From Macrostomum lignano (taxonomy: Eukaryota): 64,000 nucleotides of DNA. Shown piece after piece: positions 6,669 to 54,255 of this stretch. Within the stretch, counting starts at the first letter, position 1. Every line of letters begins with the position of its first letter. The position numbers and the translations under genes are program-made. The stretch spans positions 1 to 64,000 of the forward strand of contig NIVC01002460.1 of NCBI GenBank assembly GCA_002269645.1, given 5' to 3'. Under the pieces are notes generated by a model, which did no database searches, was not told the origin of the DNA, and worked only from the letters and a program-made list of their open reading frames with translations.

Positions 6669-9600
6669 ATGAGAGAAGATAAAATGCTAGACACTCCTCA
6701 AGTTGAGAATAGCGGCAAACAACAAAGCGATTCCTCAGAAGCCGACAAGACAGACGAACGCGACGCGTCGGTCTCGGTGTCGCTGCTGAGCTTCGCAGAC
6801 TCCACCACTGCTCACGGGTTCTCTCGGCTGGCGGGCTCCTCAGGTCGAACTGGCAGCGGCCTGTGGCTGCTGTTTCTGCTGGCGGCCTACGCCGGCCTCT
6901 GCTACCACACCGCCACGCTGGTCCTCAAGTTCCAGAGCCACCCGGTGTCCACCAGCCTGATTGCGGAGGTTCCATTCCAGTACCCGGATATCTACCTGTG
7001 CAGTGCCAATCCTGTAGGCTACAGCCGCATCACCAAGTCCATCCAGAAGACGGCCGACTACGCCTACCTGTACGAGACCAACGTGACGGCTTACAACTTG
7101 AAGCTGCAATTCGATGTGGAAAACAATTCAGCTGCTGAAGTAAGCCGGGGAATATATACTGGTTGGTTGAACTGGCAGTCAGTGATATTGTCCAGCAAGA
7201 TTGACTTGGCTCGAGGTAAGGGTACAGAATTTGTGTCTTTTTATATGTAGTGCACATGACATATCATTTTGCAGTCAGTTTGAGCTTGGTTCGCCGCCAA
7301 GTGTAACCTTTTTTATACAACAATGTTCCCCGAAATACATGAAAAACATTATTTTTCACATTTATCGTCATTACTATATTGCAGACCTTCTGAACAGCTG
7401 TCGAATCTCTCTGCATGGCCAGGAGTTCGTAGGAAATTACACCACAGCGCTCACCTACAACCAGAGCTTGCAGCCGGTCCGAGTGCCCTGCCTCACCTGG
7501 TCAGAGGCCCGATCGCTCGTTAGCAATATCTCATCCGCCATTGGCAATCTGATGCCCAACCTGAACCACTCTTCGTGCGTCTACAACTCCAGTCTAAACG
7601 TCTCACTAATCAAGGATGTGTTAGGTTAGTTCCGTTTCTCTGGAAATGCTATCATGAAAGGTTTACCGAATGACTTGACGCAACTTGGGAAGATGACTTG
7701 AGTTCAAAGTAGGAAGAGAGCTTGTTTTTGTTTGAAGCCTTAATCTGGTGCAATCCAGAAACTGTTCTCCAAGAACACGGGGCGGCTTCCACAGAAGCAG
7801 TCAACATTGCTTTGTTGGTTTGCTCAAAGGCTTTAAACAACTGATTTCCTATCACTTCAACGTCCCGCTCTTCTGATGCTAATTATCGGCAGTGGCAACA
7901 GGCTAATTAATATTTGATTTTGTTTCATATACTCACCTTCTTGTCATTTGGCAATCTCTTTTTCAACCCGTCTCGCTTCTCCACTGCATCGCTTTGTCAC
8001 ACAACTCAAAAACTTCTGCGCTCTCATTCACAGTAAGAAAACGTTTACATTCTCAGATTCCAGCATCTCAGACAACAGCTACATCATTGGCAGCGTGCTG
8101 CAAGGCCCGCTCTGCTTCCACAGATCTGCCAGCAGCGGCAGCGGACTGGACATCAACTACTGCGGCGTTCCGTATTGCAGTGAGTGAAAAAGATGTCTGT
8201 TGCTGAGGTTCAGTTTGACTATTTTTAGGCGGCAGCTAGCAAAGAGACAGCAAAAAGTATAGCATTTTGCAAGCTAGTAGAGACTACGAGCAAGCAATTT
8301 AATCCAAGATAGCAAAACACATGAATTTTGAGCCTCACTATGTGACACTGTGTGTTAAAGTGTGTCAAATCGGCAGGCATTTTAATCCTTGGAGCACTAT
8401 ATTGCTCGGCCTTTTCATTAACTTCATGCATGCCTCCAACCAAACCAACCAGGAAGCTCCATATGAAAAAGTTACGACGTAGAGCAAGGTTCAGCAAAAA
8501 AATTCACTTAACGAAACCTGCATTGGTATAGTCTCTACTAGCTTGCAAAATGCTATTGTTGGCCAAGCTTACTTTTAAGCACACTTAAGTACAGACTTGC
8601 ATAAAAATGCCCTGATGCATGCACCACCCTCTGTGCTCTGTACCAAAGACAATTAAGTCAACTAGACCATACACTATCTAAAGTCAACTTGACCATAGAG
8701 AATAAAGTCAACTAGACCATAGAGAATAAAGTCAACTAGACCATAGACAATTAAGTCAACTCGACATAGACAATATAAAGTCAACTAGACCATAGAGAAT
8801 AAAGTCAACTTGACCATAGAGAATAAAGTCAACTTGACCATAGAGAATAAAGTCAACTAGACCATAGACAATTAAGTCAACTCGACCATAGACAAGAAAA
8901 TCAACTCGACATAGACAATATAAAGTCAACTAGACCATAGAGAATAAATTCAACTAGACCATGGACAATAAAGTCAACTTGACCGTAGACAATAATCGTC
9001 GGGCACCTTCCGAGCTTCATGTATTAGAAAATGAATTTGCTTTTAACTAAATCTAAAGGACTAATAGTGCGGTTCAGAATGAAGGTTAATAAGTAAAAAT
9101 CTTTCATAAGCGAAATAAAAACAAATCGATTTAACTTTTTGTTAATCAAGCCTCGCTTATAGAAACCACAAAAAGCTTGAGGCGCATTTTTTTGCAGGCA
9201 CTATTTTAATGCAGCTGGTTATAAATTATTTATGAACTGTAGGAATGCTTTAGGCTGACTAACAAAAGAAAAAGAAGACTTGTTCAAGTGTATGAGGGGC
9301 CTACTTTACCATGTGCAAGATTTCTCATGCCACTAGCATGAGTTGAGTCCTACTATGAACTTTCCACGCATATGCAGCAACTAACTAAGGAAAGAGTTCT
9401 GTGATAAAAACTAGTACTCGAACAAGTACCATGTCGTTTTTCTGCTTCTGAAGGCAAGAGATATAAAGATGGTTCAACGCAGAGAACTACTATTGTAGTT
9501 AAAATTTTTGATAGCATTGCATTATATGTATTCTATTGTTCAAGTGAATTAAAGCAAAATGTCATCTTCTGTTTACATTTTTTTCATAATTTAAGCAAAT

Positions 9601-12600
9601 GAGTTAGTTGCTAAAGTGGCATTGTGTCACTAAAATATGTAGGAAATTAGCTTGACTTATTTGACTCAGCTGCAGGGGCTCCGGGCATCCGGCTACAGTG
9701 GGGAGACGTCGCCTGCCGACCCCTGGCAACCAACAGGCAGCTGTGGTGCTGTGGTGTCGCGCAGGGAGATCCGGTAGTGCCGGTGTCCGAAACGTGGTCC
9801 CTCTCCCGGTCCCCCTCGCTCGCCCGGTGGCTCTTAGGTAGCGGACGAGCTGGCAGAGATTCTCTGGCCTGAAAACGGGCTGAGGTAGGTGAGCCAAGGA
9901 CTACTTATATGCTAGTGGTCCTTGAGGTGAGCCTGTCCTGAGTAAAGGCGGGCAAGTCACAGATGAAGCGCTCCGCATTCTCAACAAAAGAGATGCAAAA
10001 TGGGCACTCATCACTACGGATTTTTCCCTGGAGGTAGCAATGCATGGCCTGAGAGAGCCATGGTCACCGCCCTGATGTCCCTGGGCGTTCCGCTATATTT
10101 AGGAGCAAGTTAAAGATTTTACAAATCAATTTAAAAATGGTCTGAACCAACTGTACATTAATGTGAATCGGCTTTCAAAGAAGCCGTCAAGACTCAACAC
10201 GCGCTAAAAACGTCCCTACGAGTAAATACCACGGTTTGCATTACCGCCAGTTAATCCTTGATTTTAAAATTTATTCGAACAATCTATGGTCTGCTGAACT
10301 ACTGCTAGTAATACGAGCTGGTCTTTTTATCCTCTGTTGTTGTATAGAAAACTAAATCAGGCAAATAAATATTGAAAATGAGCATTTGATCATACATATC
10401 TGCTTCCTATTAAAACTATTGGCTACTAATGTGTTGAAAAATTAATATGTGCTATATTTTAGTAGTTTATTTTGCAAATATATAGCCAGCCTTTTGCTAA
10501 AGAGTTTGTAGAAAACAGCGTTTAACTTAGCTTAAATCGCCCTTACAATTCGCGCGCAGGGAAAAGCGCCAACGCCCTGTCAAACTGCTCATCACTGAGC
10601 CAGAGGGTCGCGATTAACACGGCCTACATGGGCCCAGTGCGCGAGTCGCGATCTGGAAAGCCGTGTCTGTCCTGGCAAGCCCTGGCTAATGGCAGTCTGA
10701 GCCGCCGGTTCCGCAACTTGAATCCGGCCTACGAGTTCCGAGTGTTCCTGCCCGACAGCGAATCTGTCGCTAGCGTTGGCAGCGGCTGCCGCAGCGCCGC
10801 AGTGATGTTCAAGGACAACAGCAGCAGCCTGGGCTGGCAGTCCCTTACCAAGCTCGTCATAGACAGCGAAATCGGACTGGGTCCGTGGTGTCTGGTTGAG
10901 AAGCAGGGCTACAGAAATCTCACGATGGAGAGCTGCAGCGTGCCGGAATGCTGTGAGTTTAGGACGGTAGTTTGTCCACAACGTGAGATCACAGGTAGTT
11001 TTTGGGACTTAATAAATTCGACGAGTTGAGAGAATAGCTGGGATGCTGATGGTTTTGGTATGATTCGTTGAAGATTTAAGTGAAGCAGGACAATTATTTC
11101 AGTAGGTTTTGTATATTTATGATGGTTCAATGTGGTTCATTGTAGTATTTTTAGGAAAAAATTAACACACGAAGTACAAATTATCCCGGGTTATTTCTCA
11201 GAAAATAAATCATTTGTTTCTAATTGAGCATGCCCGTCTGTTGTTACACGTGTGATGCGTTGAAAAAGTAAAAAGTAGCTTCTAGGAAACCCCACGTGCT
11301 GCATGAATATCGATGCGACACTATTTTCTATTTTTCAGCAACCTCGCTGAAGTGCATCTCAGGCCTGCTGCACCAGAAGTACGGACCTCACGTGCTCTCC
11401 AAGCTGGTCGGCCCGAGCTTGGACGTCACCCTGCTCGACTGCAGCTTCGGTAGCATGAAGTGCACACCGGCTGACTTCACTGCGCTGCACCATCCCTACT
11501 ACGGCGCCTGCTACAAGTTCAACAGCGCTCCGTTCCTTCGAGACTTGACGCCGATGCAGCACGGCTTGCGTCCACTCAGTCTGAAGCTGTTCGCCGATGA
11601 TCACGACTACCTGGGGAACCGGCGTCCAGACACCTTCACGGCCGTCCGAGCAGTCATGGGCGGCCCGTACAATCTCGGAGAGGCGAGTGACCCGGCCGGT
11701 TTCAACCTGATCCTGATGCCGCCGGGAGCTTATCCAGGCACCTCACATGCCATTCCAATTTACACGGGGGCTCGGTCCACTGTTCGTATGCGCTACATCC
11801 TGGACATGGACAACACAACGAGGGGCCTTTGCAACAGTAACGAGTCAAGCATTGACTACAACATCTACAGCTGGAGCCCGACTGTACTTCGGCCGAAAAC
11901 TGAGCAGAGCTTTAAGTCGCCTGATCCCTACTATTTGTAAGTGCTTTAGCGTGTTGAAAAAGTTTGGTTGAGTGTGCGCTTGCGTGTAGATCTTAGGTCT
12001 AAGTCGAGCAGTAACAAGTACCTTCTTCCATGGTACGTTCTCGATCAGGGGCGTCGCCACTGGGGGGGACAGGGGGGACATGTCCCCCCCCAGTAAGAGC
12101 TTTGGGGGGACATTCCAATGCTTTGTCCCCCCTCCCTAATCCACCTTGTGACCCGTTGTGGGAAGCAATGATTTTGTTTCAGGGCGCTTAAATGTAGCAC
12201 ATGCAGCGCTAAAGTAGTGCCTGCGGCGCCAAAATAATCGCTGCCAGCACCACTCTGAAAATAATGTACACATGTGTCAAAATTTAGTCATGTACATGTA
12301 TAATTTGCAGAATTCTTTGCTTTGCCCCCCACCATAAAATCCATGGCGACATCCCTGTTCTCGATGAGTAGTCTGAATGAATGAGTAGTCCTGATAAGTA
12401 ATTCGACCTTGTTTCTCCGCGCAGCCAATTCAACAGAAGCTTTTTGGCTTTTACGAGCAACCAGGAGTCCTGCGCCAATCTAGCCGTCATTGACGAGTTT
12501 GTCCGCAAATGCAACTGCCTGCCCTACTCGCTGCCGATCCCTGTAAAGTACAAAAACGTAATCGACTGCTTTCATCTGAACAAATCCGAGCCCGACGCTG

Positions 12601-13719
12601 TTCTTCGCCTAATCGCGAGGGAGGACTGCGCCGTGAAACTGTTCTCGCAACTGGAGACACTCACCGAGACTTTCTGGGCCGGCTGCAGGGCCAACTGTAA
12701 GATGCCCAAGTACGCCACGCAGCTTGTGAGTTGGACAAGAAATCAGCCAAGCATTGCTTTTGAGTAGTTTGACAGAAACCAGTTGTACAGCGAGCTAGAA
12801 AACTCTTGTGACTTAATGATTTATGGATTGTGTCAGGTGTTAGACGTTCAGTTTAGTACAAAAGTGTCGAAAAAGAGCTTTTTGCGACAATAGCTAGTGC
12901 TGCCGGTGTCCAGCGGAGTCCAGGAGGTGGATGGTCGCTCGCCTCGGTAGCCCTTAGGGGTACAGGACGAGCTGAAAAAAATTCTCGGGCACAAAAGCGT
13001 CGGAAAGGTCTGGGTTTGGGTCGACCGCATTTTCAACACCAGAAACACAGAATGGGCATTCCTCACTGCGGATTTCCCCTGGAGGTAGCGATACCTGGAA
13101 AATAGCCATGGACCTGAGTGGGTCATGGTTACCACTCTGATGTCCCTGCGGTTGAGTCCAAGCGGGCTCTGCTTTGAATAGCCAAACTTTGAATACTTCC
13201 AGTTGAGAACAACTAGTTATGTTTCCAACCCTTCAGACAACTCAGCCGTGGCCCGACGCGTCCCACGCCGCTTACAACGCGACGCTACGGTCGCTCACTT
13301 CGCTGATCGGCTTCCCGAAGCAGGTGAGCCCCGACCAGGGCCTGACCATGCTCTACTACTCCTACCTGCAGGGTGAGCAGCTGATCCAGCCCAGCTCCGT
13401 GCAGCGCTTCGGCCAGTCGCTGGCCATGCGAGAGGCGGCCCGCAGCAACCTGGCCTGGATCCGGGTCGAGGCCGAGTACCCGATCGGGTCCGGCAGCGCC
13501 CAGGCCGACGGATATCCGGTGGAGAATCTGCTGGCCGAGATGGGCGGCATTCTGGGTCTGTACTGCGGCGTCTCGGTGCTGACCATCTGCGAGCTGATGG
13601 ACCTGGTGGGCCGCCTGCTGCACCGTGCCGCGCTGCGGTGGATGCGCCGCAGTCTGGTTGGCAGCTCCAACGCCAAGGACGACAAGGTAGTGGAGGTGCA
13701 GCCAGCTAGAAAGCTGTAA
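6669..13719 (+). CDS. DEG/ENaC (amiloride-sensitive sodium channel family) paralog B, complete 7-exon model: 6669-7215, 7385-7624, 8057-8179, 10560-10952, 11339-11936, 12425-12725, 13237-13719
   Basis: Pre-TM1 STTAHG motif, TM1, HPVST, YPDIYLCSAN, HPYYGACYKFNS, Cys-rich thumb region and TM2 with GVS. All six introns are GT-AG and phase-compatible when traced by hand. Confidence 0.9.
8259..8556. mobile_element. Small inverted-repeat (MITE-like) element in ENaC intron 3
   Basis: Perfect 28-bp inverted repeat atagcattttgcaagctagtagagacta at 8259-8286 and 8529-8556. No clear TSD. Confidence 0.5.
8650..8995. repeat. ~24-bp tandem repeat (aaagtcaactagaccatagagaat)
   Basis: About 14 degenerate copies visible. 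Confidence 0.9.
9680..10095 (-). mobile_element. Interspersed repeat copy 2 (same family as 4680-5020)
   Basis: Same shared motifs, plus ccctggaggtagc..ccatggt..ctgatgtccct, which it shares with copy 3. Confidence 0.55.
12046..12357. mobile_element. hAT-type MITE in ENaC paralog B intron 5
   Basis: TIRs caggggcgtcgcca / tggcgacatccctg with an exact 8-bp TSD ttctcgat (12038-12045 and 12358-12365). Confidence 0.87.
12895..13170 (-). mobile_element. Interspersed repeat copy 3 (more diverged)
   Basis: gacgagctg..attctcgggc, cgcattttcaaca, ccctggaggtagc and ctgatgtccct motifs. Confidence 0.45.
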
Positions 13720-14523: not shown

Positions 14524-15765
14524 TCACAAAGATGTCAGCGGCTGGCATTGCTTTGTTCTCAACCGAGCAGCACCGCCTTCTGGTAGCTCCTGAAATGAAG
14601 AAGCATTGAAATATGATTATTTAACTAGGAATGAGTAGTTATTCCGCATCAGATAGATTTCTCACTCAACTTGTCCTCCTAAACCTGTCCTACTAGACCT
14701 GTCCTACTCATATGTCCTACTCAACCTGTCCCACTTAACCTGTCCTACACAACCTGTCCTCCTAAACCTGTCCCACTCAACCTGTCCTACTTAACCTGTC
14801 CTACTCAACCTGTTCTACTCAACCTGTCCTACTTAACCTGTCCTACTCAACCTGTTCTACTCAACCTGTCCTACTCAACCTGTCCTACTCAACCTGTCCT
14901 ACTTAACCTGTCCTACTCAACCTGTTCTACTCAACCTGTCCTACTTAACCTGTCCTACTCAACCTGTTCTACTCAACCTGTCCTACTCAACCTGTCCTAC
15001 TCAACCTGTCCTACTCAACCTGTCCTACTCAACTTGTCCTACTTAACCTGTCCTACTCAACCTGTCCTACTAGACCTGTCCTACTAGACCTGTCCTACTA
15101 GACCTGTCCTACCTAACCTGTCCTACTCAACCTGTTCTACTCAACCTGTCCTACTCAACCTGTCCTACTCAACCTGTCCTACTCAACCTGTCCTACTCAA
15201 CCTGTCCTACTTAACCTGTCCTACTTAACCTGTCCTACTCAACCTGTCCTACTAGACCTGTCCTACCTAACCTGTCCTACTCAACCTGTCCTACTAGACC
15301 TGTCCTACTAGACCTGTCCTACTAGACCTGTCCTACTAGACCTGTCCTACTAGACCTGTCCTACTAGACCTGTCCTACTAGACCTGTCCTACTCAACCTG
15401 TCCTACTCAACCTGTCCTACTAGACCTGTCCTACCTAACCTGTCCTACTCAACCTGTCCTACTAGACCTGTCCTACTTAACCTGTCCTACTTAAACAGTC
15501 CTACTCAACCTGCCCTACTCAACCTGTTCTCCTCAACCTGCCTTCCTCAACCTTCTTTCTTTCCCAGGCCCTCACCAGCCGCCGATAAACGAGTACAAAG
15601 GTCCTGCCAGCGTGGCTCTGTGCTGTTGCTGCTGTGTCGGATAAGCCGCAGCTGCAGCGCTGCCGCCCGATCTGGCCAATCCAGAGCCTGTCGGTGCAGT
15701 GCAACAGCCGCCGCGGCTTCGTTGACCAGCGCTGCTCGGATGCCGCCTCATGGCTGACAGGGAGG
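14524..15765 (-). other. Two putative terminal exons (15765-15576 and 14589-14524) of an unidentified gene
   Basis: Acceptors cttgtttccag and ttcatttcag, donor gtgag, phase-compatible open frame ending in TGA. No recognisable homology. Confidence 0.3.
14665..15545. repeat. 14-bp tandem repeat (aacctgtcctactc)
   Basis: About 60 copies, filling the intron between the two putative exons. Confidence 0.95.
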
Positions 15766-16197: not shown

Positions 16198-16243
16198 TAG
16201 ATAGATAGATAGATAGACAGATAGATAGACAGATAGATAGATG

Positions 16244-16274
<31 letters not shown>

Positions 16275-16307
16275 GGATAGATAGATAGATAGACAGATAG
16301 ATAGATG

Positions 16308-16338
<31 letters not shown>

Positions 16339-16339
16339 G

Positions 16340-16404
<65 letters not shown>

Positions 16405-16408
16405 GATG

Positions 16409-16462
<54 letters not shown>

Positions 16463-16467
16463 CAGAC

Positions 16468-16514
<47 letters not shown>

Positions 16515-16515
16515 C

Positions 16516-16566
<51 letters not shown>

Positions 16567-16567
16567 C

Positions 16568-16598
<31 letters not shown>

Positions 16599-16668
16599 CA
16601 GATAGATAGATAGATAGATAGTAGATAGATAGATATTGAATAGATAGATAGATAGATAGATAGATAGA
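16198..16668. repeat. (GATA)n microsatellite
   Basis: Directly visible. Confidence 0.98.
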
Positions 16669-17639
16669 TTTTTGACAATTTCGGACATTTATGACAGCCA
16701 ACGCAGTTATGAAGTATGATTTATGACAGTTATGAAACTGCTATTTTTAGCCATAATAGACTGAGCCGTATGCTCGATCCACGCAGCCTTCTAGAGAACT
16801 TTCTACTCGTACATTTTAGAACAAGTTTTGTTTGCACACGAATCCCACCAACCTCGCGCCGTGCAACCCACCCCACTCCCCCAATTAACCAGTAAAATTT
16901 ACAAATACTAAATACTCAATAACTACAAAGGCCTCATACTGCAGCAAGCGGATGCTGGAAGCCGAATGCCTATCTCTACCCAACACACCGAAGCTACATT
17001 AATACCCCAACTCAACTCGACAGGTACTCGATCCCTATGGATGAGCAGATTTGAACGCTAATATCAGCAGCTATGGCTACCCCAACTCAGACATTCTGAC
17101 ATTCAGGCATCGAGCGATCACGGCAGTACGTAGTGATCTCAAAAAATGCCTGTTGCAATTCAACCTTACAAAAGAAGCCCAGAAGTTCTACGTTACTTTT
17201 CGAGACTTTTTATACGTTTTATCCATGTACATGTACGCGATTTTCACCTGGTCCGGCACACTGAATTCTTTAATTTTCAAGTCAAATAATTCGTACGAAA
17301 TTAAACTCGCAGTTTTCTACTCTAAGTGGACTGGGAATTTTTTGTTTTATTTGTATTGAAAAAAGCAGCAGTTAAAGTGAACACAAATGCTCATCCTCAT
17401 TTCGTCAGCATACTTGTACAGTTATGTCTTCTAAAAAGGATTTTCCTGATATATTATTCTTTGAGCCAGAACACGTGGACCTGGTTCGATTCCGTGAGCG
17501 CGGCCACTCTAATTTAAGGCTTACGCTCGTATGGACGAAAATTTGCCGAGTGGTTGTCGTGCGATTCACCCATCAGGGCCACTCCAAAATGCACAGAGTG
17601 TACATGCAACCATGGACGATTAGAAAGTATTATTGACTG

Positions 17640-18410
17640 CGGAGAGCTGCACGATAGCATCACGTGATTAAGGTTCAAGGCTGCTGCTAGGGCAATCATC
17701 TGATTGGTCGTAGAGACCTGCCCGATTAGCATCACGTGATTAAGGTTCCAGGCTGCTGCTAGGGCAATCATCTGATTGGTCGTAGAGACCTGCACGATTA
17801 GCATCACGTGATTAAGGTTCAAGGCTGCTGCTAGGGCAATCATCTGATTGGTCGTAGAGACCTGCACGATTAGCATCACGTGATTAAGGTTCCAGGCTGC
17901 TGCTAGGGCAATCATCTGATTGGTCGTAGAGACCTGCACGATTAGCATCACGTGATTAAGGTTCCAGGCTGCTGCTAGGGCAATCATCTGATTGGTCGTA
18001 GAGACCTGCACGATTAGCATCACGTGATTAAGGTTCCAGGCTGCTGCTAGGGCAATCATCTGATTGGTCGTAGAGACCTGCACGATTAGCATCACGTGAT
18101 TAAGGTTCCAGGCTGCTGCTAGGGCAATCATCTGATTGGTCGTAGAGACCTGCACGATTAGCATCACGTGATTAAGGTTCCAGGCTGCTGCTAGGGCAAT
18201 CATCTGATTGGTCGTAGAGACCTGCACGATTAGCATCACGTGATCTAAGTTCAAGGCCGCCGCTAGGGCAATCATCTGATTGGTCGTAGAGACCTGCACG
18301 ATTAGCATCACGTGATCTAAGTTCAAGGCCGCCGCTAGGGCAATCATCTGATTGGTCGTAGAGACCTGCACGATTAGCATCACGTGATTAAGGTTCCAGG
18401 CTGCTGCTAG
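17640..18410. repeat. 72-bp tandem minisatellite, about 10.7 copies
   Basis: Unit gcatcacgtgattaaggttccaggctgctgctagggcaatcatctgattggtcgtagagacctgcacgatta, near-identical copies. Confidence 0.95.
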
Positions 18411-18719
18411 GGGAAAACATCTGACTTGGTGTTAATAACACGTAGTTGTCTCCGTCGAAAAGTTATTTGTCTTCAGTTTAAAAACAATTTTTCTGTCACT
18501 GTAACTCCTATAATTCTGTAACTGTTTAATCACTAAACTTTGAAGTGTTGAGCTGTTAGTAAATCGAGATTCCTTGAAAGAAATTGTTTCCGCGAAATGA
18601 GTATTCTAGGTAAGCTGTAAATTCACTACAATTTTTAATAGCTCACTCAGACTGATATATGTAACTCGATTTTAAGTGCGCGTATACCTATAGTATTCGA
18701 ATATGTACAAGTACAGACG

Positions 18720-19448: not shown

Positions 19449-20803
19449 CAAGTACAGACGAAATGCGACAGAGACTCAATGTCTCTGTGAATTGAAAAAT
19501 GTGTTCTGTGAATTAAACACCACGAGGTAGTTTTCATCAACATGCATTTGTTTTCAAAAAGGTCTACTGTCAGTAGAGCGTGTAACAAATGAAGCATTTC
19601 TCGCTTTAAGGCTTCGAGTTCTCTGGCGCAAACTAAGTATTGTAAAAAAACGAATGCGAAAACGAAAACAAAGACCACTTATAAAGAAATTTTTAGAAAA
19701 AACGAACGTAGCAAACAAAAGAAGAAACTGTAGATTTTTTTATTGCATTCAAGCAATTTTTTATTAACGATTTAACAAATAGAAACAGTAAAAGCTAATA
19801 AAAATATGTATAAAGACTAACGACTATTTTTAATCTAAAAATGGTTTATATCCTACTAACAATGCGAAAAGCCGCACAAATTGTATTGTGCGGCACAATA
19901 AAAGAGATAAACAAAATAAACAAAAATGCACAACAATTTGACTTAACACAACAGAAAAGCAAAAACAAAAAACAGAAACAATATTGCTACAAATAGTATA
20001 ATTGAAGCTTGTTTTGCTGCTTTATACCTGTTGTAAAATATTGGCAAAAAACTACAAAAAGATGGAAACCACAAATACAAATACTATAATATTAGTAAGG
20101 CTGATTTATAACTAAAAATGCATGTATACTACTGACAATGCGAAAAAGTCGCGCAATACAAAAAGATGGACAGAAAATGCATAAAAACACGTTTAAAAAC
20201 ACGCATTTGAAATGAACCAAAGAAAACAAAAAACACAATGCAAGATTAGAGATTAGCAACGAAATAACTATTTAGCTACACCTTAATTACCAACTTGGCT
20301 ACGCCATTAATCATAAAAACTTACAAGTTACATTTACTTTCGATACATATCGGTACAAATAGAACAAAGACTCAAATGCTTCACTTCTGAACCTAATGCT
20401 ATACAAAAGCCGAATAGGCTGCAGATAGATATCCTATTTTAACTTAATTAGAAATAAGTTAGCCTGAAAAATCGTAGAGATCAACGGATTTCCATAAGAA
20501 TTATACATCGATATAAGAGTAATGCAAACTCCACCATGTACTATTGTGCCTTGCTTAGTCGCCGTGTTGCTTGACTTCTAACGGGAAGGTCGGGGGTTCA
20601 AATATTAACTGCTCGACCAAACTGTTTTTTTTCTTTTTAATTTGTTTACTAGAAGAGAGTAATTTCTCCTCTTTTGTAGTTTGTAATTTTTTCAATCATA
20701 ATTTTTGTCTTTAATAAACTTTCATGTTTACAATTAATTTCCGATATGTATCGAAATGATTTAAAACTCTGGATTAGGGAATGTTCATTGATTGGACAAG
20801 TTT

Positions 20804-22390
20804 TTATTGCCGCTTGTTGTTATGCACGGTGCGGATGTGATACTTGAGATGGCTGTTCACACTGAAAGCCTTGCCACAGTAGCTGCAACTGTATGGCTTC
20901 TCGCCTGTGTGGATGCGCATGTGAGTCTTGAGACTGCCGTCTTGACTGAAAGCCTTGCCACAGTAGCTGCAACTGAATGGCTTCTCGCCTGTGTGGATGC
21001 GCATGTGAGTCTTGAGACTGTCGTCTCGACTGAAAGCCTTGCCACAGTAGCTGCAACTGAATGGCTTCTCGCCTGTGTGGATGCGCATGTGAGTCTTGAG
21101 ACTGTCGTCTCGACTGAAAGCCTTGCCACAGTAGCTGCAACTGAATGGCTTCTCGCCTGTGTGGATGCGCATGTGATTCTTGAGATGGCCGTCTTGACTG
21201 AAAGCCTTGCCACAGTAGCTGCAACTGAATGGCTTCTCGCCTGTATGAGCTCGCATATGAACAGTCAGATTTACTTCCAGCTGAAACCTAGCCTTACACA
21301 CAGAACAGACGTATCGCCTCTCCAACAGATGCACCAATCTCACGTGAGCAATTTTACTCGATTTACTCTTGAAAACTTTCTCACAAAATCCGCAAATTAA
21401 ATCGCCTCCCGAGTTTAAAATGTCGGCCTCTTCATACAGCGGCCTGTCGCTAGCGCTGTCGCCGTCTTCAGCTACAATGTTGTACAGTTTGGCCATCTCG
21501 TCGCCATAGTAGACTAGAAGCTCGTGATCCGGACTGATGTCCCGGATAGCAATGTAATAGACGTTATTATCCCACTGGAAGGCTATCATGTTCTGCTCGC
21601 AGAGGTTCCTACTACAATTAACGTAGCGCATCCAATTGGAGAAGCGCATGTCGGCGGCGTCAACCCATTCGCAAGACTTGTCGCGTCGAATCTCCCAGGC
21701 GTAGGACGACGCCTCGGCGGTGGCTTTGTCGGTGATTCGCTGGCCAAGATAGGGTCCGAAGATGGAGCCCCTAGCGATAGGAGCTTCGGCCCACACGCCA
21801 TTGCCAGCGTGTCGGCCAACAGCGGAGCGGCAGATCCTCATGCCGTCAGGCAGTGTGAGATCACAGAAATTCTCAGCAGTGCCAAATCCATCCGGCATTT
21901 TATTGCTCACCCAGCGTTGATGCAGCTGGCAGCAATCGCCAAACACCTCTTTGCCGCAGTCATAGCAGTACAAGCTGCGCTCATCCGTCTCCTTGTAGAC
22001 GCAGGCAGTTTTACCGCGCCTTGGCGGCAGTTGGCGCGGCTCTGTCGGTAGAAAAGCCGCGATGACAGCAGAGCTAGAACTCTTGAACTTGCTGGAACAG
22101 GCAGAAGCAGTTTTGATCTTCTTCTTTGAGTTGGCCACTGGCTGATAGTCAGGGTCGCTGTCACTATCATTCCGGTTGCGCTTCTTTTGCACAGTACAGG
22201 CTCGTTTCGGCTGCTTTTGCCTAGCAACTGTTGCCTTGCCAACAGCAGCTGTTGACGCTGCTCGCTGCTGCTCCACTGGTTGTTGCAGATCTGGGACACC
22301 TTCAGCACCAAATAATTCTTTAATGAGGCGCTCATTTTCTGCCTTCCTGTTCAACCGCAGCAGCTCATAACTGCTAATGGTTGCTGACAT
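20804..22390 (-). CDS. PRDM9-like: PRDM9-like histone-lysine methyltransferase: zinc knuckle, PR/SET domain and 7 C2H2 fingers, single 528-aa ORF
   Basis: Zinc knuckle [18 protein letters not shown]; PR/SET motifs [28 protein letters not shown] and ELLVYYGDE; two unique fingers followed by five tandem 28-aa fingers with TGEKP linkers. Confidence 0.88.
20826..21245 (-). repeat. 84-bp coding minisatellite (zinc-finger array of the PRDM9-like gene)
   Basis: Five units, near-identical at the DNA level outside the recognition-helix codons. Confidence 0.95.
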
Positions 22391-23250
22391 CTAGAAGTTG
22401 TAAACAAATCAAATATCACATTAAAGCTAGTCAAATTTTCTGAATAAAAATTGTAGCAATACTTCTTAGGCCTATCTTAAGGAAGTTAATATGTAAATCC
22501 TTAAAGAAAAAATGGACACTAAACAAAATTTATCCAATAAAAAAGTATTCAGCCAATCAAGTTGAGTCATGACCTACTCTAATTGCTTTCATAAGCATTA
22601 AGAAAACAACTTTTCAAGTTCTTTTAGCATAGAAAAGTCTCTTAGCCAGAAAAAAGAGCCACAGACAGATTCAATAAAATCAATAAAATTCAAAAAAAAT
22701 AAAAAACCAACAATGCAACCAACCTTGCTACCTTGGGATTGGACATGATCACAATCAATCATGATTTGATTAAACTAGTTCATGAGGTCATTAATTTTTC
22801 CTTACTTTTCTCTCTTTTTAACTCTTTTTTGCCTTTGCATTCAACTTTTAATTTTAATTTTTCATCTTAATTGTAACTTTTTTATTTATTTAATTTACAA
22901 ATAATTTAATACAAATATGTAAAATACTAGATTTATATATAAAAGCTATTCCATTCTAAGTAATTATCATGAATAGATAATGGTCTTTTCCTGCTTGTCA
23001 ATTTCATTTTTGATCTTATACATCTATTGCAAGCTGCATTAATAGTTATAGATAATGACTAACTAAGCAATATTGAATAGGATATTAGAGAATATCTTAA
23101 TGGCCAGTTTTGGCAACTTAAATCAAATTTCTTTAAGAGTAGATACTTAACCTAAAGAAAGACAAAGAAGTTATATAGGGCCAAGTCAAAGCTATAATGA
23201 AGTGGATATTATAATAACTACACTCATAAATTCAACTCAATTCTATGAAC

Positions 23251-26264: not shown

Positions 26265-27869
26265 TAGTCAGGTGCAGGTGTCAGGTGCAAGTGAAATATA
26301 TAATGACTCAAAGAATATACACCTATACATATATGAGTGCACTAGTATACATCCACAAGTTAGTTTGCCAGACATATACAGTACAGTATATAGAGTGTAG
26401 CCTACAGGGTACAGTGAAATTTAGTACTGCAGTCTGCAATGCTGCATAAGTGAATGATAAATCAATTGGTAAAGAACGTGGAGGCAGGAGAAAGGGAAGA
26501 GAAATGAGGTACTTCCATTTTTCAATAAGCAGAGGCGTGCTACCCCCCCCCCGGTCCTTAAGTGTGGTGGTGCATAGGTAAGTTGCAAATCTGGACAAAA
26601 CTAAGTTGCACTGGACGGGTGAAATTTTGAGGTTAGGCATGTATGGATTTGTTTCTAACTTCTTAGACTTCTTGTTTCTTGTTAACCATTAATATTACTT
26701 ACAAACATTTAAATTAGGCCTAAACAAATCTTCTTCTAATATACTAAATCTAAGCTGTCTCTGTCTGTCTGTCTGTCTATTATTTTTCTCAAATTGATTT
26801 CCACCAAACTTGCACTATTTGATTAGAAATTTTTCTACAGTATGACAATACATGGGTCGTGGCTAAGAAATTGCTCAATGTTAAAGGGATTAAATATTCG
26901 AAAAACTGTATTCTCCCTATCTAATTAATGTATTTTTCTTGCATTGAGAGCTCAATATGTTTATGGCCATAGACTGAACTTCAATTCTTGAGCTGATGCT
27001 ATGAGTTATAAATAGCTATACCTAGCTTATTAAATTGTAAAATTTATGAATATCTGTCTTCAACTTGAATTGTTTGAATCCAGAACTGATTGTTTGAATA
27101 TTTGTTGAGATGTCAAGGCTTACTAGGAGCATTGCTAAGATGCTATTGTCAAAGCGTATAGCTGGGGGAATTGCTGAGATTCCAGGGCTTACTGGAAACA
27201 TTGGTCTATTCATTAATATATTAGCAATATTTTCATTTTCCCTTTTGCACTCCCCAAATAGGCTGGATTTCTAGTAAAACTCTATTTATCAATTTATGCT
27301 TCCTAACTTATAATAACAATAGACATGCAATTTTTTCTTTCATGGCCTAATTTTCAACTTAATTTCAAATTTTCTAGTTTTAATTTTAGGGATTTTTTAG
27401 TTTTTAAAACATTTTAGGTTGTAGACACAGCATATTTTAAAATAAATTTTATACGTTTTTGAATTGAAAATTAATCATAATTAATTTATTGAAATTAAAT
27501 AAACAAAAATTATAATTAAATTGTAGTTTGTGCTATTGTTGTAACATTATTCCAATGTCCCTGTGAGGGCTATCAGAAAATTTTTGCTTATTAGTCAATA
27601 AAATTAAAACTAAGCCATATTAAAAGATAAAACTTATCAAAAAACTCTATCAGCATCTCATCACTCAAAATATTTGCCACTAGCCTCAAGGCATTTTTCC
27701 TACTGCCACACAAGTCCATCAATGCTGGCACTAATGCTGCTCTTTGTTGTGGCTGCCAATCCTGCCCTTCCTTTGCAATAAGCCTCATTGACTTCTTCCT
27801 TGCTGCTAAAATATTGGCCTCATATTGCCTCCTTGATCCTAGGGAAGAGGAAAAAATCATATGGGCTAA

Positions 27870-28380
27870 GATCCAGCGAATAAGGCCAATACAGAAGAAT
27901 TTCCTAGCCCCATGAGAAGATGGCTTGAATCACAATTTTTTTGCAATGTAGAGCAGCTTGTCTTGCAGCAGGATTGGGCCCTGGGCATGCAAGCTTGGCC
28001 TTTTGTTGCAACTGGCTCTTTGTACCTTGCACAACACTTTCAAAAAATAGTCACCATTGATTGTCTGGCTGGCAAGAATAGCCTGATTGAAGATGATGCC
28101 TTTATGATAAAAAAAGTCACATGCATAATTTTCAGTTAAGCAATGCTCTTTGCAACCTTCACTGGCCTTGGAGAGCCAGGCTAGCACCAACATGCACTTT
28201 GCCACAAGCCACAATTCTTTAAAGAAACTGAAGTCCCTTGCACCTGTATCTTTGCAGATGAGCTACACTGAGAGTTGTGTGATAGACTTTGTTTCCCTGA
28301 CAGGATTTGAGATACCCACTTTGCACAAATCTTCCTGACTCTAAGATCTTCAGTTAGAACTTGTCAAAAATGGAGGTGTT
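27870..28380 (-). mobile_element. Second mariner transposase relic
   Basis: FFYHKGIIFNQAILASQTINGDYFLKVLCKVQRASCNKRPSLHAQGPILLQD matches the mariner catalytic region. Broken frames. Confidence 0.7.
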
Positions 28381-30251
28381 TATAATAAGACTTATAAATT
28401 TTCTACTGTGAAGCTAGGTTTCAAGATTTTAAGCCAATTTTTTTGTAATAGGCACATTATAGGCCTATACCAGGCAATAGCCTGGGCTTAGCTATATTTT
28501 GTTATGTGAATTATTAAAAAAGATTGGCCAATAAGCAAAACTTTTCTAATAGCCCTTGTAATTTCTAGAAACTTTTATTATCTTTGCATATCCCATATAA
28601 GTAAAATGTCTACATTAAGTCAAAGAAATTTATTCATTTTTTTGCAAATTTCTATAGGCCCCCTAGGCTGAACTAAATATTTTTTTGCTTAAAATTAATA
28701 TACTTATGGTTTAATTATTAGCTATATTATTATTAAAGGCATTTACTTTTAATAGTTCCAAATATATTATAAAACAATATCTTTGTTCTAATCCTAGAGA
28801 ACTTTCTAAAACATTGTTGATTTCTCTATAAATATATACTAGGCAATTAGGCAAACCCAGCTAGTAATCAAGTTTTTTTACTCCTCAATATTTAATAACA
28901 AAGCAAACAAATGAACTAGGCGTACCCTCTTTAAATCTTACTTATTTTGCCAATTTGCCATACTGTATATTAAGTTCTACCTATTCAATCTTTTGCTACT
29001 AGGTGGATGTGGATCCTAAGTAAATGTCGTTTTATTGCCAATATTGGCACTGCATTGATTTTTACAAATTTTGTAAAAAAAGTATAAAAATTTTGTGTAT
29101 GAACTGATATTAAATTTTGGGTAGACCTTTATCTTTAAGCCTAAGCCCTAAGTATCTGTATAGGGCCTTAGTATTAAATAAATACATTTATTTAAAGTAG
29201 AGAATAGGTAGGCCTTGGCCTATGCTATGACAATGACTAGGTAATAGTAGGGCCTATAAAATTGATAAGGGGGGGGGGCTAATGATGACTAAATTTACTA
29301 TGAAATTAAATAGGAGGGCCTGAACATGATAACAAATGCAAGATTTTATAAATTTACAGGGGTCTAGTCAAGCCTCCAGGTGTTCAACCTAGGGGCCTAG
29401 TCTTCTAATAATACTAATCCTCCTATACCTTTCTTTTTGATTTTAAACTCAGCTTAGCTTTTCCTGTCGCTAAATACATAGCACAATAAGCAAGTACACA
29501 GAAACTTTGATAAAGAAAGATAAAGAAACTTTGATCCAATTTCTTTCAAACCAATGTCAATTTTGCCTATATCTTTGCATATTATGACTGCTGCGAGTGT
29601 CACGGTTTGAGCAACTTATCAACGTCAGCAAAACAAAAGTAGGCCTACGACTTCGTCACAGCGAGTGCCGATTCCTGAACAGGACGCGTATTTTTTCAGT
29701 CACGGGAGATCGACTTATCGACTACTGACCTACTCCTATCGGCAGGTGCCCTGACCATAGAGAGAATTGCTTATAATAATGCGTACACAGTTTGTATTAT
29801 CCAAAGCGTTACGTGTATTAACAAAAAACGTATATAACAACGAGTTAAACTTGACATTTGAATGCTTCTCCGAAGATTTTTGAAATAGTATTTTTATATT
29901 TTTTGACCCTCTGCTCTGTGGAGGACGTCTGTGCTCATTTATTCATATGAAAATGATAATAACCTTTCACAACAGAATAACAACGCTCTAGATCAGTGGT
30001 GGATCCTGCAGGATTTTTACAGTAGGGGGAGTGCATGCGGACCAGCCAAAATTTTTGTGTTAGCCCAATATACATGTACATGTAAGCCCCAAATCAGACC
30101 AAAAGTTACAATACCCCGGCAAAAGAGGGAGGAAAAAGAGGGGAATTTATTCCTATTGAAACTATGGATTGTTGGTCAGGCTAGTATTCACTGATCATAA
30201 AATATAGTATTAGATCATCGTGCTACTTTGTTGCGCTACATGTAGATCTAG

Positions 30252-30631
<380 letters not shown>

Positions 30632-34299: not shown

Positions 34300-35105
34300 A
34301 GTCTCTCTCCCATCTCTCTCATCCCTCTACCATCTCTCTCCCATCCCTCTCCCATCCCTCTACCATCTCTCTCCCATCCCTCTCCCATCCCTCTCCCATC
34401 TCTCCCATCCCTCTCCCATCACTCTACCATCTCTCTCCCATCCCTCTCCCATCCCTCTCCCATCTCTCCCATCCCTCTACCATCTCTCTCCCATCCCTCT
34501 CCTATCCCTCTCCCATCCCTCTCCCATCTCTCTCCCATCCCTCTCCCATCCCTCTCCTATCCCTCTACCATCTCTCTCCCATCCCTCTCCTATCCCTCTC
34601 CCATCTCTCTCCCATCTCTCCCATCCCTCTCCTATCCCTCTACCATCTCCCTCCCTCCCTCTCCCATCCCTCTCCCATCTCTCTCCCATCCCTCTCCCAT
34701 CCCTCTACCATCTCTCTCCCATCCCTCTCCTATCCCTCTCCCATCCCTCTCCCATCTCTCTCCCATCCCTCTCCCATCCCTCTACCATCTCTCTCCCATC
34801 CCTCTCCTATCCCTCTCCCATCCCTCTCCCATCTCTCCCATCCCTCTCCCATCACTCTACCATCTCTCTCCCATCCCTCTCCTATCCCTCTCCCATCCCT
34901 CTCCCATCTCTCCCATCCCTCTCCCATCACTCTACCATCTCTCTCCCATCCCTCTCCTATCCCTCTCCCATCCCTCTCCCATCTCTCCCATCCCTCTCCC
35001 ATCACTCTACCATCTCCCTCCCTCCCTCTCCCATCCCTCTCCCATCACTCTACCATCTCTCTCCCATCACTCTACCATCTCTCTCCCCTCCCTCTCCCAT
35101 CCCAG
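34300..35105. repeat. CT-rich repeat (ccatccctctc)n
   Basis: Directly visible. Confidence 0.95.
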
Positions 35106-47304: not shown

Positions 47305-52697
<5,393 letters not shown>

Positions 52698-52894: not shown

Positions 52895-52943
52895 GACAGA
52901 CAGACTGACTGACTGACTGACTGACACTAAGACATTAAGATAG

Positions 52944-53006
<63 letters not shown>

Positions 53007-53253
53007 CTAAGACAGACAGACAAACAGACACTAAGACAGACAGACAAACAGACACTAAGACAGACGGACAGACAGACAGACAGACACTAAGACAGACACA
53101 CAGACGGACACTAAGACAGACAGACAAACAGACACTAAGACAGACAGGCAAACAGACACTAAGACAGACACACAGACAGACACTAAGCCATTAAGATAGA
53201 CAGACGGACAGACAGACAAACAGAAACTAAGACAGACAGACAGACAGACACTA

Positions 53254-53286
<33 letters not shown>

Positions 53287-53910
53287 CTAAGACAGACAGG
53301 CAAACAGACACTAAGACAGACAGACAAACAGGCACTAAGACAGACAGACAAACAGACACTAAGACAGACAGACAAACAGACACTAAGACAGACAGACAGA
53401 CACTAAGACAGACACACAGACGGACACTAAGACAGACAGACAAACAGACACTAAGACAGACAGGCAAACAGACACTAAGACAGACACACAGACAGACACT
53501 AAGCCATTAAGATAGACAGACGGACAGACAGACAAACAGACACTAAGCAGACAGACAAACAGACACTAAGACAGACAGGCAAACAGACACTAAGACAGAC
53601 AGACAAACAGACACTAAGACAGACAGACAAACAGACACTAAGACAGACAGACAAATAGACACTAAGACAGACAGACAAACAGACACTAAGACAGACAGAC
53701 AAACAGACACTAAGACAGACAGACAGACAGACACACACACTAAGACAGACAGACAAACAGACACTAAGACAGACAGACAAACAGACACTAAGACAGACAG
53801 ACAAACAGACACTAAGACAGACAGGCAAACAGACACTAAGACAGACAGACAAACAGACACTAAGACAGACAGACAAACAGACACTAAGACAGACAGACAA
53901 ATAGACACTA

Positions 53911-53943
<33 letters not shown>

Positions 53944-54054: not shown

Positions 54055-54091
<37 letters not shown>

Positions 54092-54214: not shown

Positions 54215-54255
<41 letters not shown>

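Follow-up and report, generated by a model that had tools for sequence, protein, structure and literature searches.

An intronless Prdm7/9 gene with an incomplete KRAB domain in the flatworm Macrostomum lignano

PRDM9 homologs that designate meiotic recombination hotspots have been defined by a combination of features (Baker et al., 2017; Rudler et al., 2026). The protein contains a KRAB domain, an SSXRD segment, a PR/SET domain and zinc fingers (ZnF), keeps three tyrosines, and carries a fast-evolving finger array. Further criteria are H3K4me3/H3K36me3 activity, meiotic expression, breaks or crossovers at the bound motifs, and co-occurrence with ZCWPW1, ZCWPW2, TEX15, FBXO47, and HELLS (Baker et al., 2017; Rudler et al., 2026). 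Truncated homologs, including the kXSZ and XSZ types of cnidarians and the N-terminally truncated PRDM9s of teleosts, are also under constraint and generally keep the tyrosines (Baker et al., 2017; Rudler et al., 2026).

PRDM9 is not restricted to vertebrates. Orthologs with concerted, positively selected fingers were found in Nematostella, Lottia and Capitella (Oliver et al., 2009), and orthologs have been described in 28 cnidarians (Rudler et al., 2026). For the platyhelminths a loss was inferred, as Prdm7/9 was reported absent from the two flatworms sampled, Schmidtea and Schistosoma (PMC4760075). The related PRDM11 was described as vertebrate-specific and fingerless (PMC4760075). It arose by PRDM9 duplication. 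A KRAB-related N-terminal domain is unique to PRDM7/9 among the PRDMs. Here, a gene of this subfamily in the flatworm Macrostomum lignano is described and compared with these systems.

Gene, domains and family placement

The gene is located on contig NIVC01002460.1 of the M. lignano assembly GCA_002269645.1, within a stretch of 64 kb that was analysed as a whole and is here called the window. A single, intact and intronless ORF runs from ATG to stop at 20804..22390 on the minus strand, the strand having been omitted from the earlier note on this DNA, and encodes 528 aa. An identical protein product is already recorded for this contig and assembly, and a 99%-identical copy in UniRef carries the name PRDM9. 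The product consists, in order, of a KRAB tail, a diverged SSXRD-like segment, a zinc knuckle, a PR/SET domain, one isolated finger, and a six-finger array. The features are as follows:

22391..22396, minus strand: TTCTAG acceptor-like motif abutting the ATG and holding an in-frame stop TAG; candidate trans-splice or cis acceptor
20804..22390, minus strand: PRDM9-family ORF, 528 aa, stop codon included (ORF call, Pfam, record match)
22286..22390, minus strand: KRAB-domain tail, aa 1-35 (KRAB-overlapping matches against shuffles; predicted helix)
22070..22285, minus strand: Ser/Lys-rich low-complexity linker, aa 36-107, predicted disordered (pLDDT)
21977..22069, minus strand: diverged, shortened SSXRD-like segment, aa 108-138 (matches against shuffles)
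21911..21976, minus strand: pre-SET zinc knuckle, aa 139-160, with C142, C145, C154 and H157 (alignment, predicted structure)
21476..21862, minus strand: PR/SET methyltransferase domain, aa 177-305 (Pfam, HMMER, fold)
21749-21751, 21554-21556 and 21506-21508, minus strand: codons of the PR/SET tyrosines Y214, Y279 and Y295
21323..21400, minus strand: isolated post-SET C2H2 finger (finger 1, H-x4-H; pLDDT about 84)
20822..21313, minus strand: tandem C2H2 array, fingers 2-7 (Pfam)
20861..21244, no strand assigned: minisatellite-like repeat, 84 bp, 4.6 copies, 97% identity, coding for fingers 3-6 (repeat analysis)
20803..20808, minus strand: AATAAA candidate poly(A) signal overlapping the stop codon (motif)

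The description in the earlier note of a single ORF with a zinc knuckle, a PR/SET domain and seven C2H2 fingers is borne out by the ORF call, by Pfam, which returned PRDM2_PR (1.4e-34, aa 192-304), SET (6e-12) and seven C2H2 fingers for the 528-aa protein, and by the conservation of the knuckle. Over the knuckle and PR/SET, the protein matches PRDM9 structures at E = 1e-31, so the domain matches are no chance result. Catalytic and zinc-binding residues are retained. HMMER alignment to solved mouse and human PRDM9 paired Y214, Y279, and Y295 with FGPY, (Q/K)IFY, and LLVWY, i.e., with Y276, Y341, and Y357, as had been proposed by eye; in the M. lignano protein FGPY ends at Y214, NVYY ends at Y279, and Y295 lies within VYYG. 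The knuckle has the pattern C-x2-C-x7/8-C-x2-H and aligns to that of PRDM9, and its ligands C142, C145, C154, and H157 occupy columns whose conservation among 50 family members is at least 90%. Of 51 highly conserved columns, 44 are kept, among them those of the three tyrosines and the four zinc ligands, and the PR/SET fold is predicted with pLDDT >90.

The PR/SET domain is closest to PRDM9, not to PRDM11, PRDM2 or MECOM, in sequence, distance tree and predicted fold, and the gene is a member of the Prdm7/9 subfamily; the earlier proposal of a PRDM9-type gene in an invertebrate holds. Ranking against PDB sequences gave PRDM9 (113/110 bits), followed by PRDM11 (77), PRDM2 (71), PRDM14 (66), PRDM12 (62), PRDM4 and MECOM (61 each), PRDM5 (57), PRDM1 (55), and PRDM10 (47). 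The SET-core distance is 0.82-0.97 to PRDM9s bearing KRAB and SSXRD, compared with 1.30 to PRDM11, 1.34 to PRDM2, and 1.49 to MECOM. In a neighbor-joining tree with these three families only as outgroups and with low deep support (ingroup 66%), the SET domain nests among the KRAB-bearing PRDM9s. The best Foldseek match of the predicted PR/SET is PRDM9 4c1q (TM 0.87-0.89, rmsd 2.1 A). PRDM11 has the pre-SET knuckle and the PR fold in common with the M. lignano protein (Foldseek rank 7), but it is the more distant of the two and has no fingers.

Among the named relatives, PRDM9 or PRDM7_9 proteins of a priapulid, mussel, clam, urchins, starfish, and amphioxus come closest. The nearest of the unnamed relatives, P0012 from an environmental contig, is fragmentary and carries no N-terminal information. 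The invertebrate PRDM9s annotated at NCBI as PRDM9-like or PRDM7_9 (Mytilus, Mactra, Lytechinus, Diadema, Asterias, Branchiostoma, Priapulus) belong to the same subfamily, and their KRAB tail and SSXRD regions align with the M. lignano protein, but in those orthologs that bear KRAB the domain is complete and the gene has several exons. With human and mouse PRDM9 (4c1q, 4ijd, 6nm4) the flatworm protein shares the knuckle, the PR/SET fold at 38-39% identity, and the equivalents of the three tyrosines.

N-terminal truncation and the single exon

The ORF starts at about position 15 in KRAB; the first ~14 residues, the F.D..YFS.EEW head, are missing, and the C-terminal two-thirds are retained. KRAB-overlapping matches of the ORF N-terminus number 7 against a shuffle mean of 0.04 (0 of 500 shuffles reach 7), and a helix is predicted at aa 7-27 (pLDDT 75-87). 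For aa 108-138, 6 matches to the SSXRD region that precedes the knuckle in urchin and vertebrate PRDM9s were obtained against a shuffle mean of 0.21 (1 of 400 shuffles reaches 6), the knuckle position being located by regex in this test. The individual KRAB-tail and SSXRD matches are each weak (<=4 bits), and their support comes from consistency and the shuffle controls. As judged from the sequence, the tail marks descent from a KRAB-bearing PRDM9, and the domain is incomplete. The SSXRD-like segment is ~4 acidic residues shorter than in vertebrate PRDM9 and is detected neither by Pfam nor by a vertebrate-weighted profile, a profile that also misses every named invertebrate PRDM9. The linker between the two segments has pLDDT <50 at aa 36-38, and again from aa 49 to 136, with a low-confidence helix at aa 39-47 in the predicted structure.

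The KRAB head was sought in several ways. Pfam, run at E <= 10, assigned no family to the first 190 aa of the protein. Nor was a Pfam KRAB found over 6 kb upstream, where the three frames of the minus strand were cut into stop-free segments. No head was detected in the six frames of the window with a family KRAB profile, a head-only profile and motif regexes, nor across the 41 kb upstream on the strand of the gene. A tblastn search of the window with the human PRDM9 N-terminus, a query validated by strong matches in relatives, matched neither KRAB nor SSXRD. The best minus-strand match to the KRAB head, GQYFSSKEEV, lies inside a transposase-like remnant and was dismissed as noise. The locus has no assembly gaps. 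A KRAB-head exon might have escaped detection if it were very short, very diverged or beyond the window; a hidden upstream exon is unlikely because, in the exon maps of the orthologs, the KRAB head and centre are on one exon. The "possibly complete hotspot-specifying architecture" of the earlier note is not upheld, the KRAB head being missing and the SSXRD diverged and shortened.

The gene has one exon, compared with 7-10 in the mussel and urchin orthologs and about 10 in vertebrate PRDM9; M. lignano genes have about 5 introns on average. Being intronless against this multi-exon background, the gene is therefore described as a truncated homolog of "kXSZ" type. As in the truncated PRDM9s of cnidarians and teleosts, in which KRAB is lost partly or wholly and SSXRD, SET and ZnF are kept, part of KRAB is missing and SET and ZnF are retained, with the SSXRD-like segment as a probable counterpart of the SSXRD. 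The cnidarian kXSZ forms, in contrast, lost the whole first KRAB exon, whereas the break in M. lignano falls within a single mussel/urchin exon and all other introns are gone. Coincidence of the ORF start with a conserved KRAB intron was considered and rejected, as this intron lies 28 residues further on in Mytilus and Diadema.

Two features of a processed gene were seen, the intronless copy and the 5' truncation in mid-exon; the flanks are AT-rich and showed neither a clear poly(A) tract nor duplications of a target site. No closer M. lignano paralog is present among the matches listed (38 of 150 named; 1.84 billion representatives searched). The gene may descend from a processed copy truncated at its 5' end, or may have lost its introns wholesale; either event would predate the recent genome duplication. 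With regard to the transcript, the spliced leader (SL) of M. lignano uses the acceptor motif [T/C]TNCAG and ends in ATG (PMC8629364). TTCTAG|ATG is one base off this motif, it is the sole such motif within 300 nt upstream of the ATG, and the terminal ATG of the SL would be in frame. The annotation is RNA-seq-derived, and the recorded product sits within a longer same-strand unit. The 5' end of the mRNA could be generated by SL trans-splicing at TTCTAG|ATG out of this longer transcriptional unit.

Tandem repeats and transposon remnants dominate both the window and the M. lignano genome. Transposon remnants adjoin the gene, and the surrounding DNA is repeat-rich. A mariner-type remnant read by eye upstream was not confirmed by Pfam, and Rfam gave no match over the whole 64 kb.

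The zinc-finger array

The C2H2 fingers are positioned at aa 333, 362, 390, 418, 446, 474, and 502. The PRDM9-like character that had been ascribed to the fingers is supported by the array, with the refinement that finger 1 stands apart and that the tandem array consists of six fingers. An equivalent of this isolated post-SET finger is present in human PRDM9. The array resembles that of vertebrate PRDM9 in being C-terminal, minisatellite-encoded and variable at helix positions -1, +2, +3, and +6; it differs in comprising only six fingers and in following the post-SET finger without a long linker.

Variation in the array is confined to the DNA-contact positions, and the array is fast-changing, as in PRDM9. 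The repeat has 5 variable nucleotide sites, each of them non-synonymous and each within a codon for one of the four helix positions (P = 2.6e-5), and the core fingers 3-6 (n = 4) differ at DNA-contact codons only, with no synonymous differences. PoD is 1.0 for these four core fingers and 0.43 for the five canonical fingers. In a comparison of the two genomic copies, limited to fingers 2 and 7 of a small array as the only array fingers comparable between them, these fingers diverge by 14% against 0.6% elsewhere, about 25-fold (p = 3e-6). Outside the array, the two copies differ at 2 of 352 residues. The PoD of the core fingers is higher than in typical truncated PRDM9 forms. Since rapid finger evolution in vertebrates is reported to be typical of complete PRDM9s, the pattern speaks to some extent against the gene being a truncated, "demoted" form.

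Chromatin marking, hotspot designation and other readings

Compared with the definition of hotspot-designating PRDM9, the M. lignano gene has the tyrosines and the array and lacks a complete KRAB. The reading that we consider reasonably probable is that of an N-terminally truncated, intronless kXSZ-type Prdm7/9 member acting as a sequence-specific chromatin marker, probably in the germline, and not as the sole hotspot designator. Fingers 2-7 would bind specific DNA motifs, and the PR/SET domain would deposit H3K4me3, and probably H3K36me3, on neighboring nucleosomes, as PRDM9 does. Hotspot-setting PRDM9 of vertebrates requires the KRAB domain. Within the module through which PRDM9 is connected with the break machinery in mouse, the KRAB head is conserved most strongly, and chromatin marking without sole hotspot designation is favored because this head is missing.

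The hotspot reading stays in play because of the fast-evolving array. The gene would then be a fully functional hotspot-designating PRDM9, either because a KRAB-head exon escaped detection or because the KRAB tail and diverged SSXRD suffice in flatworms; sites bound by the array would receive H3K4me3/H3K36me3 and become sites of meiotic double-strand breaks, and hotspot erosion would drive finger turnover. Besides the conserved PR/SET with its tyrosines, further arguments come from the minisatellite array, with its contact-only variation devoid of synonymous differences and the accelerated divergence of the compared fingers between copies. Both PoD values are inside the range of full-length homologs (0.29-1.0), but 0.43 is also within that of truncated homologs (0.16-0.78), among which the kXSZ variant of Xenia has the highest PoD in cnidarians. 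In favor of this reading, the start codon sits at an acceptor-like AG; against it, the orthologs have no intron at this position and the head was found neither upstream nor elsewhere in the window. Hotspot function has moreover been tied to all four domains (Rudler et al., 2026). "PRDM" is absent from the supplementary tables of two M. lignano germline and neoblast papers, which goes against this reading yet is weak evidence either way. The balance leans against a hotspot role, and we regard the fully functional designator as unlikely. That the flatworm positions meiotic recombination with a PRDM9 devoid of the KRAB head appears quite doubtful; if it did, M. lignano would be the first protostome with PRDM9-directed hotspots, and the KRAB head would be dispensable, or replaced, where the marks set by PRDM9 are passed on to the break machinery.

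That the protein regulates chromatin sequence-specifically but has no part in recombination, for example by targeting transposons or satellites, with fingers in an arms race with repeats like those of KRAB zinc-finger proteins, seems rather improbable. In teleosts and cnidarians, purifying selection conserves truncated PRDM9 homologs for functions other than hotspot designation, potential targets abound in the window and genome, and the array shows rapid change. However, the missing KRAB head is the very part that would mediate co-repressor-type interactions, variation at contact residues only is the classic PRDM9 signature, and repeat targeting is hypothetical. The single exon, the start in mid-exon relative to the orthologs and the repeat-rich setting beside transposon remnants could also suggest a dead, 5'-truncated retrocopy whose ORF is open by chance. 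This processed pseudogene is very improbable: the 528-codon ORF is intact and its conserved positions are kept, including all catalytic residues and zinc ligands; non-array residues hardly differ between the copies, while the array has changed non-synonymously and in a targeted way; the gene is included in a transcript-derived annotation; and the flanks yielded neither poly(A) tract nor target-site duplications.

Invertebrate PRDM9 orthologs with evolving fingers have been known since 2009, and a copy of this gene already bears the name in UniRef, so that the novelty claimed in the earlier note was overstated. Such arrays have already been described for PRDM9s of cnidarians, molluscs, and annelids; what is new here is a Prdm7/9 gene in a flatworm, the first platyhelminth case examined, and a literature search on PRDM9 in flatworms returned nothing specific. 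On present evidence, the gene is an extra member of a family known from several invertebrate phyla and not a new kind of system. As an early-branching flatworm lineage kept Prdm7/9, the loss was not phylum-wide. The combination of a conserved catalytic domain, an array variable at contacts only and a broken KRAB makes the gene an informative intermediate as to which domains PRDM9-driven hotspot turnover needs. Transgenesis is established in the laboratory model M. lignano, its gonads are accessible, and a PRDM9 role outside vertebrates is therefore directly testable in it. Among other flatworms, Clonorchis has GenBank entries that were automatically named "PRDM9".

Gene content and family placement

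The PRDM9-type gene is a single ATG-to-stop ORF of 528 aa in the ORF listing, and its elements are as follows.

20804-22390, minus strand: PRDM9-type ORF
20803-20808, minus strand: AATAAA poly(A) signal, overlapping the TAA stop codon
20715 and 20641: two ATTAAA signals after the AATAAA

The product matches PRDM2_PR (1.4e-34, aa 192-304), SET (6e-12) and seven C2H2 fingers in Pfam, and its zinc knuckle is the PRDM9-type pre-SET knuckle, with C142, C145, C154 and H157 in columns whose conservation is 90% or more among 50 aligned family sequences. When HMMER aligned the PR/SET domain to solved mouse and human PRDM9, Y214 (in FGPY), Y279 (NVYY) and Y295 (VYYG) matched the tyrosines of FGPY, (Q/K)IFY and LLVWY, which are Y276, Y341 and Y357 in human PRDM9. 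The identical protein is already on record, encoded on NIVC01002460.1 of GCA_002269645.1, a contig whose first 64 kb make up the window, and a fragment of a second copy (P0001, UniRef A0A1I8ILI9), 99% identical, is named [quoted passage not shown]. The genome therefore belongs to a free-living flatworm, in which automatic annotation already calls the gene PRDM9.

Against all solved PR domains, the knuckle and PR/SET region scored 113/110 bits with PRDM9, 77 with PRDM11, 71 with PRDM2, and from 66 to 38 with PRDM14, 12, 4, MECOM, 5, 1, 10 and 16 (HMMER). HMMER, run exhaustively over 1.84 billion representatives, returned 1,997 matches, the top named ones being PRDM9-like or PRDM7_9 proteins of Priapulus, Mytilus, Mactra, Lytechinus, Diadema, Asterias, Branchiostoma, fishes and a frog. 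By Kimura distance (129 SET-core columns, 156 sequences), the SET core is nearest to PRDM9s bearing KRAB and SSXRD (0.82-0.97; mouse PRDM9 ranks eighth) and distant from PRDM11 (1.30), PRDM2 (1.34) and MECOM (1.49). In the neighbor-joining tree the domain lies inside the PRDM9-like set, with an environmental sequence as sister (56% bootstrap) and Priapulus next; the split from PRDM2 plus MECOM has 66% support, and deeper nodes lack resolution. The AlphaFold2 model (pLDDT >90 across aa 170-300) has as its top Foldseek match 4c1q, the PRDM9 SET domain with H3K4me2 and AdoHcy (TM 0.87-0.89, rmsd 2.1 A); human PRDM9, PRDM11 and PRDM1 come next. Among highly conserved family positions 44 of 51 are kept, the seven deviations being conservative or outside the catalytic core.

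From these scores, named relatives, distances, tree, structural matches and conserved positions, membership in the Prdm7/9 subfamily is well supported, the tree being a distance tree with PRDM11, PRDM2 and MECOM as outgroups; the gene is a genuine PRDM9-family member and probably competent in catalysis. The earlier note had read here one ORF with a knuckle, a PR/SET domain and seven fingers, had aligned the three tyrosines by eye and had supposed a PRDM9-type gene in an invertebrate; all of this held, and in a PR/SET tree with PRDM11, PRDM2 and MECOM, the kind of check that it proposed, the domain fell with PRDM9.

The N-terminal region and the 5' end

No Pfam family matched aa 1-190 even at E <= 10. 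Profiles built from relatives (54 with KRAB, 40 with SSXRD) gave no significant match to the protein or to a six-frame translation of the full 64-kb window, where the top KRAB-profile match (E = 1.3) was on the wrong strand. The first ~35 ORF residues were aligned by phmmer to the KRAB segment S.YEKLRLKNIKENYEMM..G...P.F of three KRAB-bearing invertebrate PRDM9s. With aa 1-40 alone as the query, the top seven matches all overlapped KRAB domains (shuffled queries: mean 0.04, 0/500 reaching seven), and the register was constant, KRAB position ~15 corresponding to ORF residue 1. The alignments, the shuffle control and this register show descent from a KRAB-bearing PRDM9; the gene has no counterpart of the opening ~14 residues of KRAB, to which the conserved F.D..YFS.EEW head belongs. 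One helix is predicted at aa 7-27 (AlphaFold2, pLDDT 75-87).

A vertebrate-weighted SSXRD profile made contact only at CVYKETDE (aa 130-137), with a negative score; it also misses all named invertebrate PRDM9s, so its failure is uninformative. The top matches of aa 108-138 were pre-knuckle segments of urchin and vertebrate PRDM9s, e.g., SPRQSRYPRRSVTRKCYKEEDVPDDD, and six matches ended just before a knuckle (shuffles 0.21; 1/400 reaching six). We call this segment a putative diverged SSXRD, shorter by some four acidic residues. Under the naming scheme of Rudler et al. (2026) the gene is kXSZ (partial KRAB, SSXRD, SET and ZnF), and judged from the sequence its architecture is truncated and intronless.

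A KRAB head hidden on an upstream exon was weighed against 5' truncation. An in-frame stop lies immediately 5' of the ATG, within the acceptor-like sequence ...ttctag/ATG. A head-only KRAB profile and motif regexes found none over 41 kb of same-strand sequence upstream of the gene, Pfam gave no match in the proximal 6 kb, and the window has no assembly gaps. In the Mytilus and Diadema orthologues, exon mapping puts KRAB head and centre on one exon, so a head on an upstream exon would require a newly gained intron; their KRAB intron follows ...EMM.EVG/L..., a site equivalent to G28/A29 in Macrostomum, at which the ORF runs on without a break. A 5'-truncated gene is the simpler reading.

The orthologues have 7-10 coding exons versus one here, and M. 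lignano genes have about five introns on average, which suggests that the gene arose as a 5'-truncated processed copy or by wholesale intron loss. No poly(A) tract or target-site duplications marking a retrocopy were found at the gene. As for its 5' end, TTCTAG/ATG is one base from the M. lignano spliced leader (SL) acceptor motif [T/C]TNCAG (PMC8629364), and if the SL supplied the ATG, the reading frame would be kept. Another called gene (372-aa product, no Pfam match), on the minus strand from 14524 to beyond 32390, spans the ORF. One possible reading is a long precursor "transcriptional unit" that yields the PRDM gene through trans-splicing, the other a dubious gene model joined up over tandem repeats; the former fits the RNA-seq-derived annotation of M. 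lignano, in which transcriptional units were divided into genes at SL sites. Given the near-motif, the in-frame SL ATG and the spanning same-strand unit, putative SL trans-splicing at the ATG would best account for the 5' end.

Finger array and hotspot designation

Fingers 3-6 are encoded by an 84-bp tandem repeat (4.6 copies, 97% identity). Their five variable nucleotide sites are all non-synonymous and all in codons for helix positions -1, +2, +3 and +6 (chance of such placement 2.6e-5), with zero synonymous differences. For fingers 3-6 the proportion of array diversity at contact residues is 1.0; over the five canonical 28-residue fingers it is 0.43, a value that does not discriminate, since it falls inside the published ranges of both full-length (0.29-1.0) and truncated (0.16-0.78) homologues (Rudler et al., 2026). 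Between the two Macrostomum copies, fingers 2 and 7 show 8 differences in 57 residues versus 2 in 352 outside the array (Fisher p = 3e-6); four of those in the fingers fall at -1, -1, +3 and +6. P0001 lacks an initial Met, begins at residue Y8 of the window protein and has fewer fingers, three intact and one fused or broken (.../EKPYSCSYC...), which may reflect real copy-number variation or repeat collapse in an older assembly. Because variation sits at contact codons, synonymous change is absent and fingers 2 and 7 change fast between copies, the array appears to behave in a PRDM9-like manner, with concerted evolution and contact-residue turnover across the four fingers and two copies compared.

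In mouse, the KRAB domain is required for the meiotic function of PRDM9 via partners such as CXXC1 and EWSR1, and the missing head was therefore weighted heavily; a role of the Macrostomum gene in hotspot designation seems unlikely. Of the earlier note's overall interpretation, the PRDM9-family gene and the PRDM9-like array stand, and the possibly complete hotspot-specifying architecture does not, the KRAB head being absent and the SSXRD diverged and shortened.

Hotspot-designating PRDM9s are recognized by four domains, three tyrosines and a fast-evolving array (Rudler et al., 2026). N-terminally truncated PRDM9s under purifying selection occur in several vertebrate lineages (Baker et al., 2017) and cnidarians (Rudler et al., 2026). 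Oliver et al. (2009) had shown that Prdm9 fingers evolve in concert in Nematostella, the snail Lottia and the annelid Capitella, and full-length orthologues were described in 28 cnidarians (Rudler et al., 2026). No Prdm7/9 member was found in Schmidtea or Schistosoma, and loss in platyhelminths was inferred (Vervoort et al., PMC4760075). Our literature search found no paper on PRDM9 in Macrostomum; the new element is the phylum, the gene's kind being already known in other invertebrates.

Relatives and neighboring features

The nearest non-Macrostomum relative (P0012, 46-48% identity) lies at 712-1428 of L004, a 2.4-kb contig of JGI metagenome 3300040801, flanked by simple repeats. It shares with the Macrostomum gene the layout of SET, isolated H-x4-H finger and array. 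All three tyrosines are retained, and its source may be another small flatworm-like animal in the environmental sample. Proteins of Priapulus (P0004), Physella (P0005) and decapod crustaceans (P0007, P0008, P0013) are among PRDM9-like models with 2-4 PR/SET copies each. Such protostome models have no detectable KRAB, and some carry 18-24 fingers, others none; tandem duplication, fused gene models or birth-and-death turnover as reported in cnidarians may account for this.

Other features of the window are as follows.

1439-2317, minus strand: weak reverse-transcriptase thumb (E = 8e-4, below the Pfam cut-off)
6669-7250, 11296-11940 and 13219-13719, plus strand: ASC/DEG-ENaC (PF00858) ORFs, profile positions 1-114, 146-295 and 400-454
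27594-28363, minus strand: frameshifted ORF pieces (...PYSLDLSPYDFFLFPRIKEAI / GQYFSSKEEV...)
47305-48072, plus strand: zinc-ribbon ORF (7e-5, below the Pfam cut-off)
59005-59529, plus strand: CS-domain ORF (8e-6)

The pieces at 27594-28363 resemble, by eye, the C-terminal part of a mariner/Tc1-type transposase; Pfam did not confirm this likeness. The three ASC/DEG-ENaC ORFs are probably exons of one amiloride-sensitive sodium channel gene downstream of the PRDM gene. Tandem repeats occur throughout (14664-15553, 16198-16669, 17642-18430, 30249-30631, 34305-35103, 49121-50282, 52930-54937 and others), with units such as 72-bp x10.9, 14-bp x63, (TAGA)n and 48-bp x42. They account for the strong local GC/AT skews, and long "ORFs" outside the PRDM gene are mostly translated tandem repeats.
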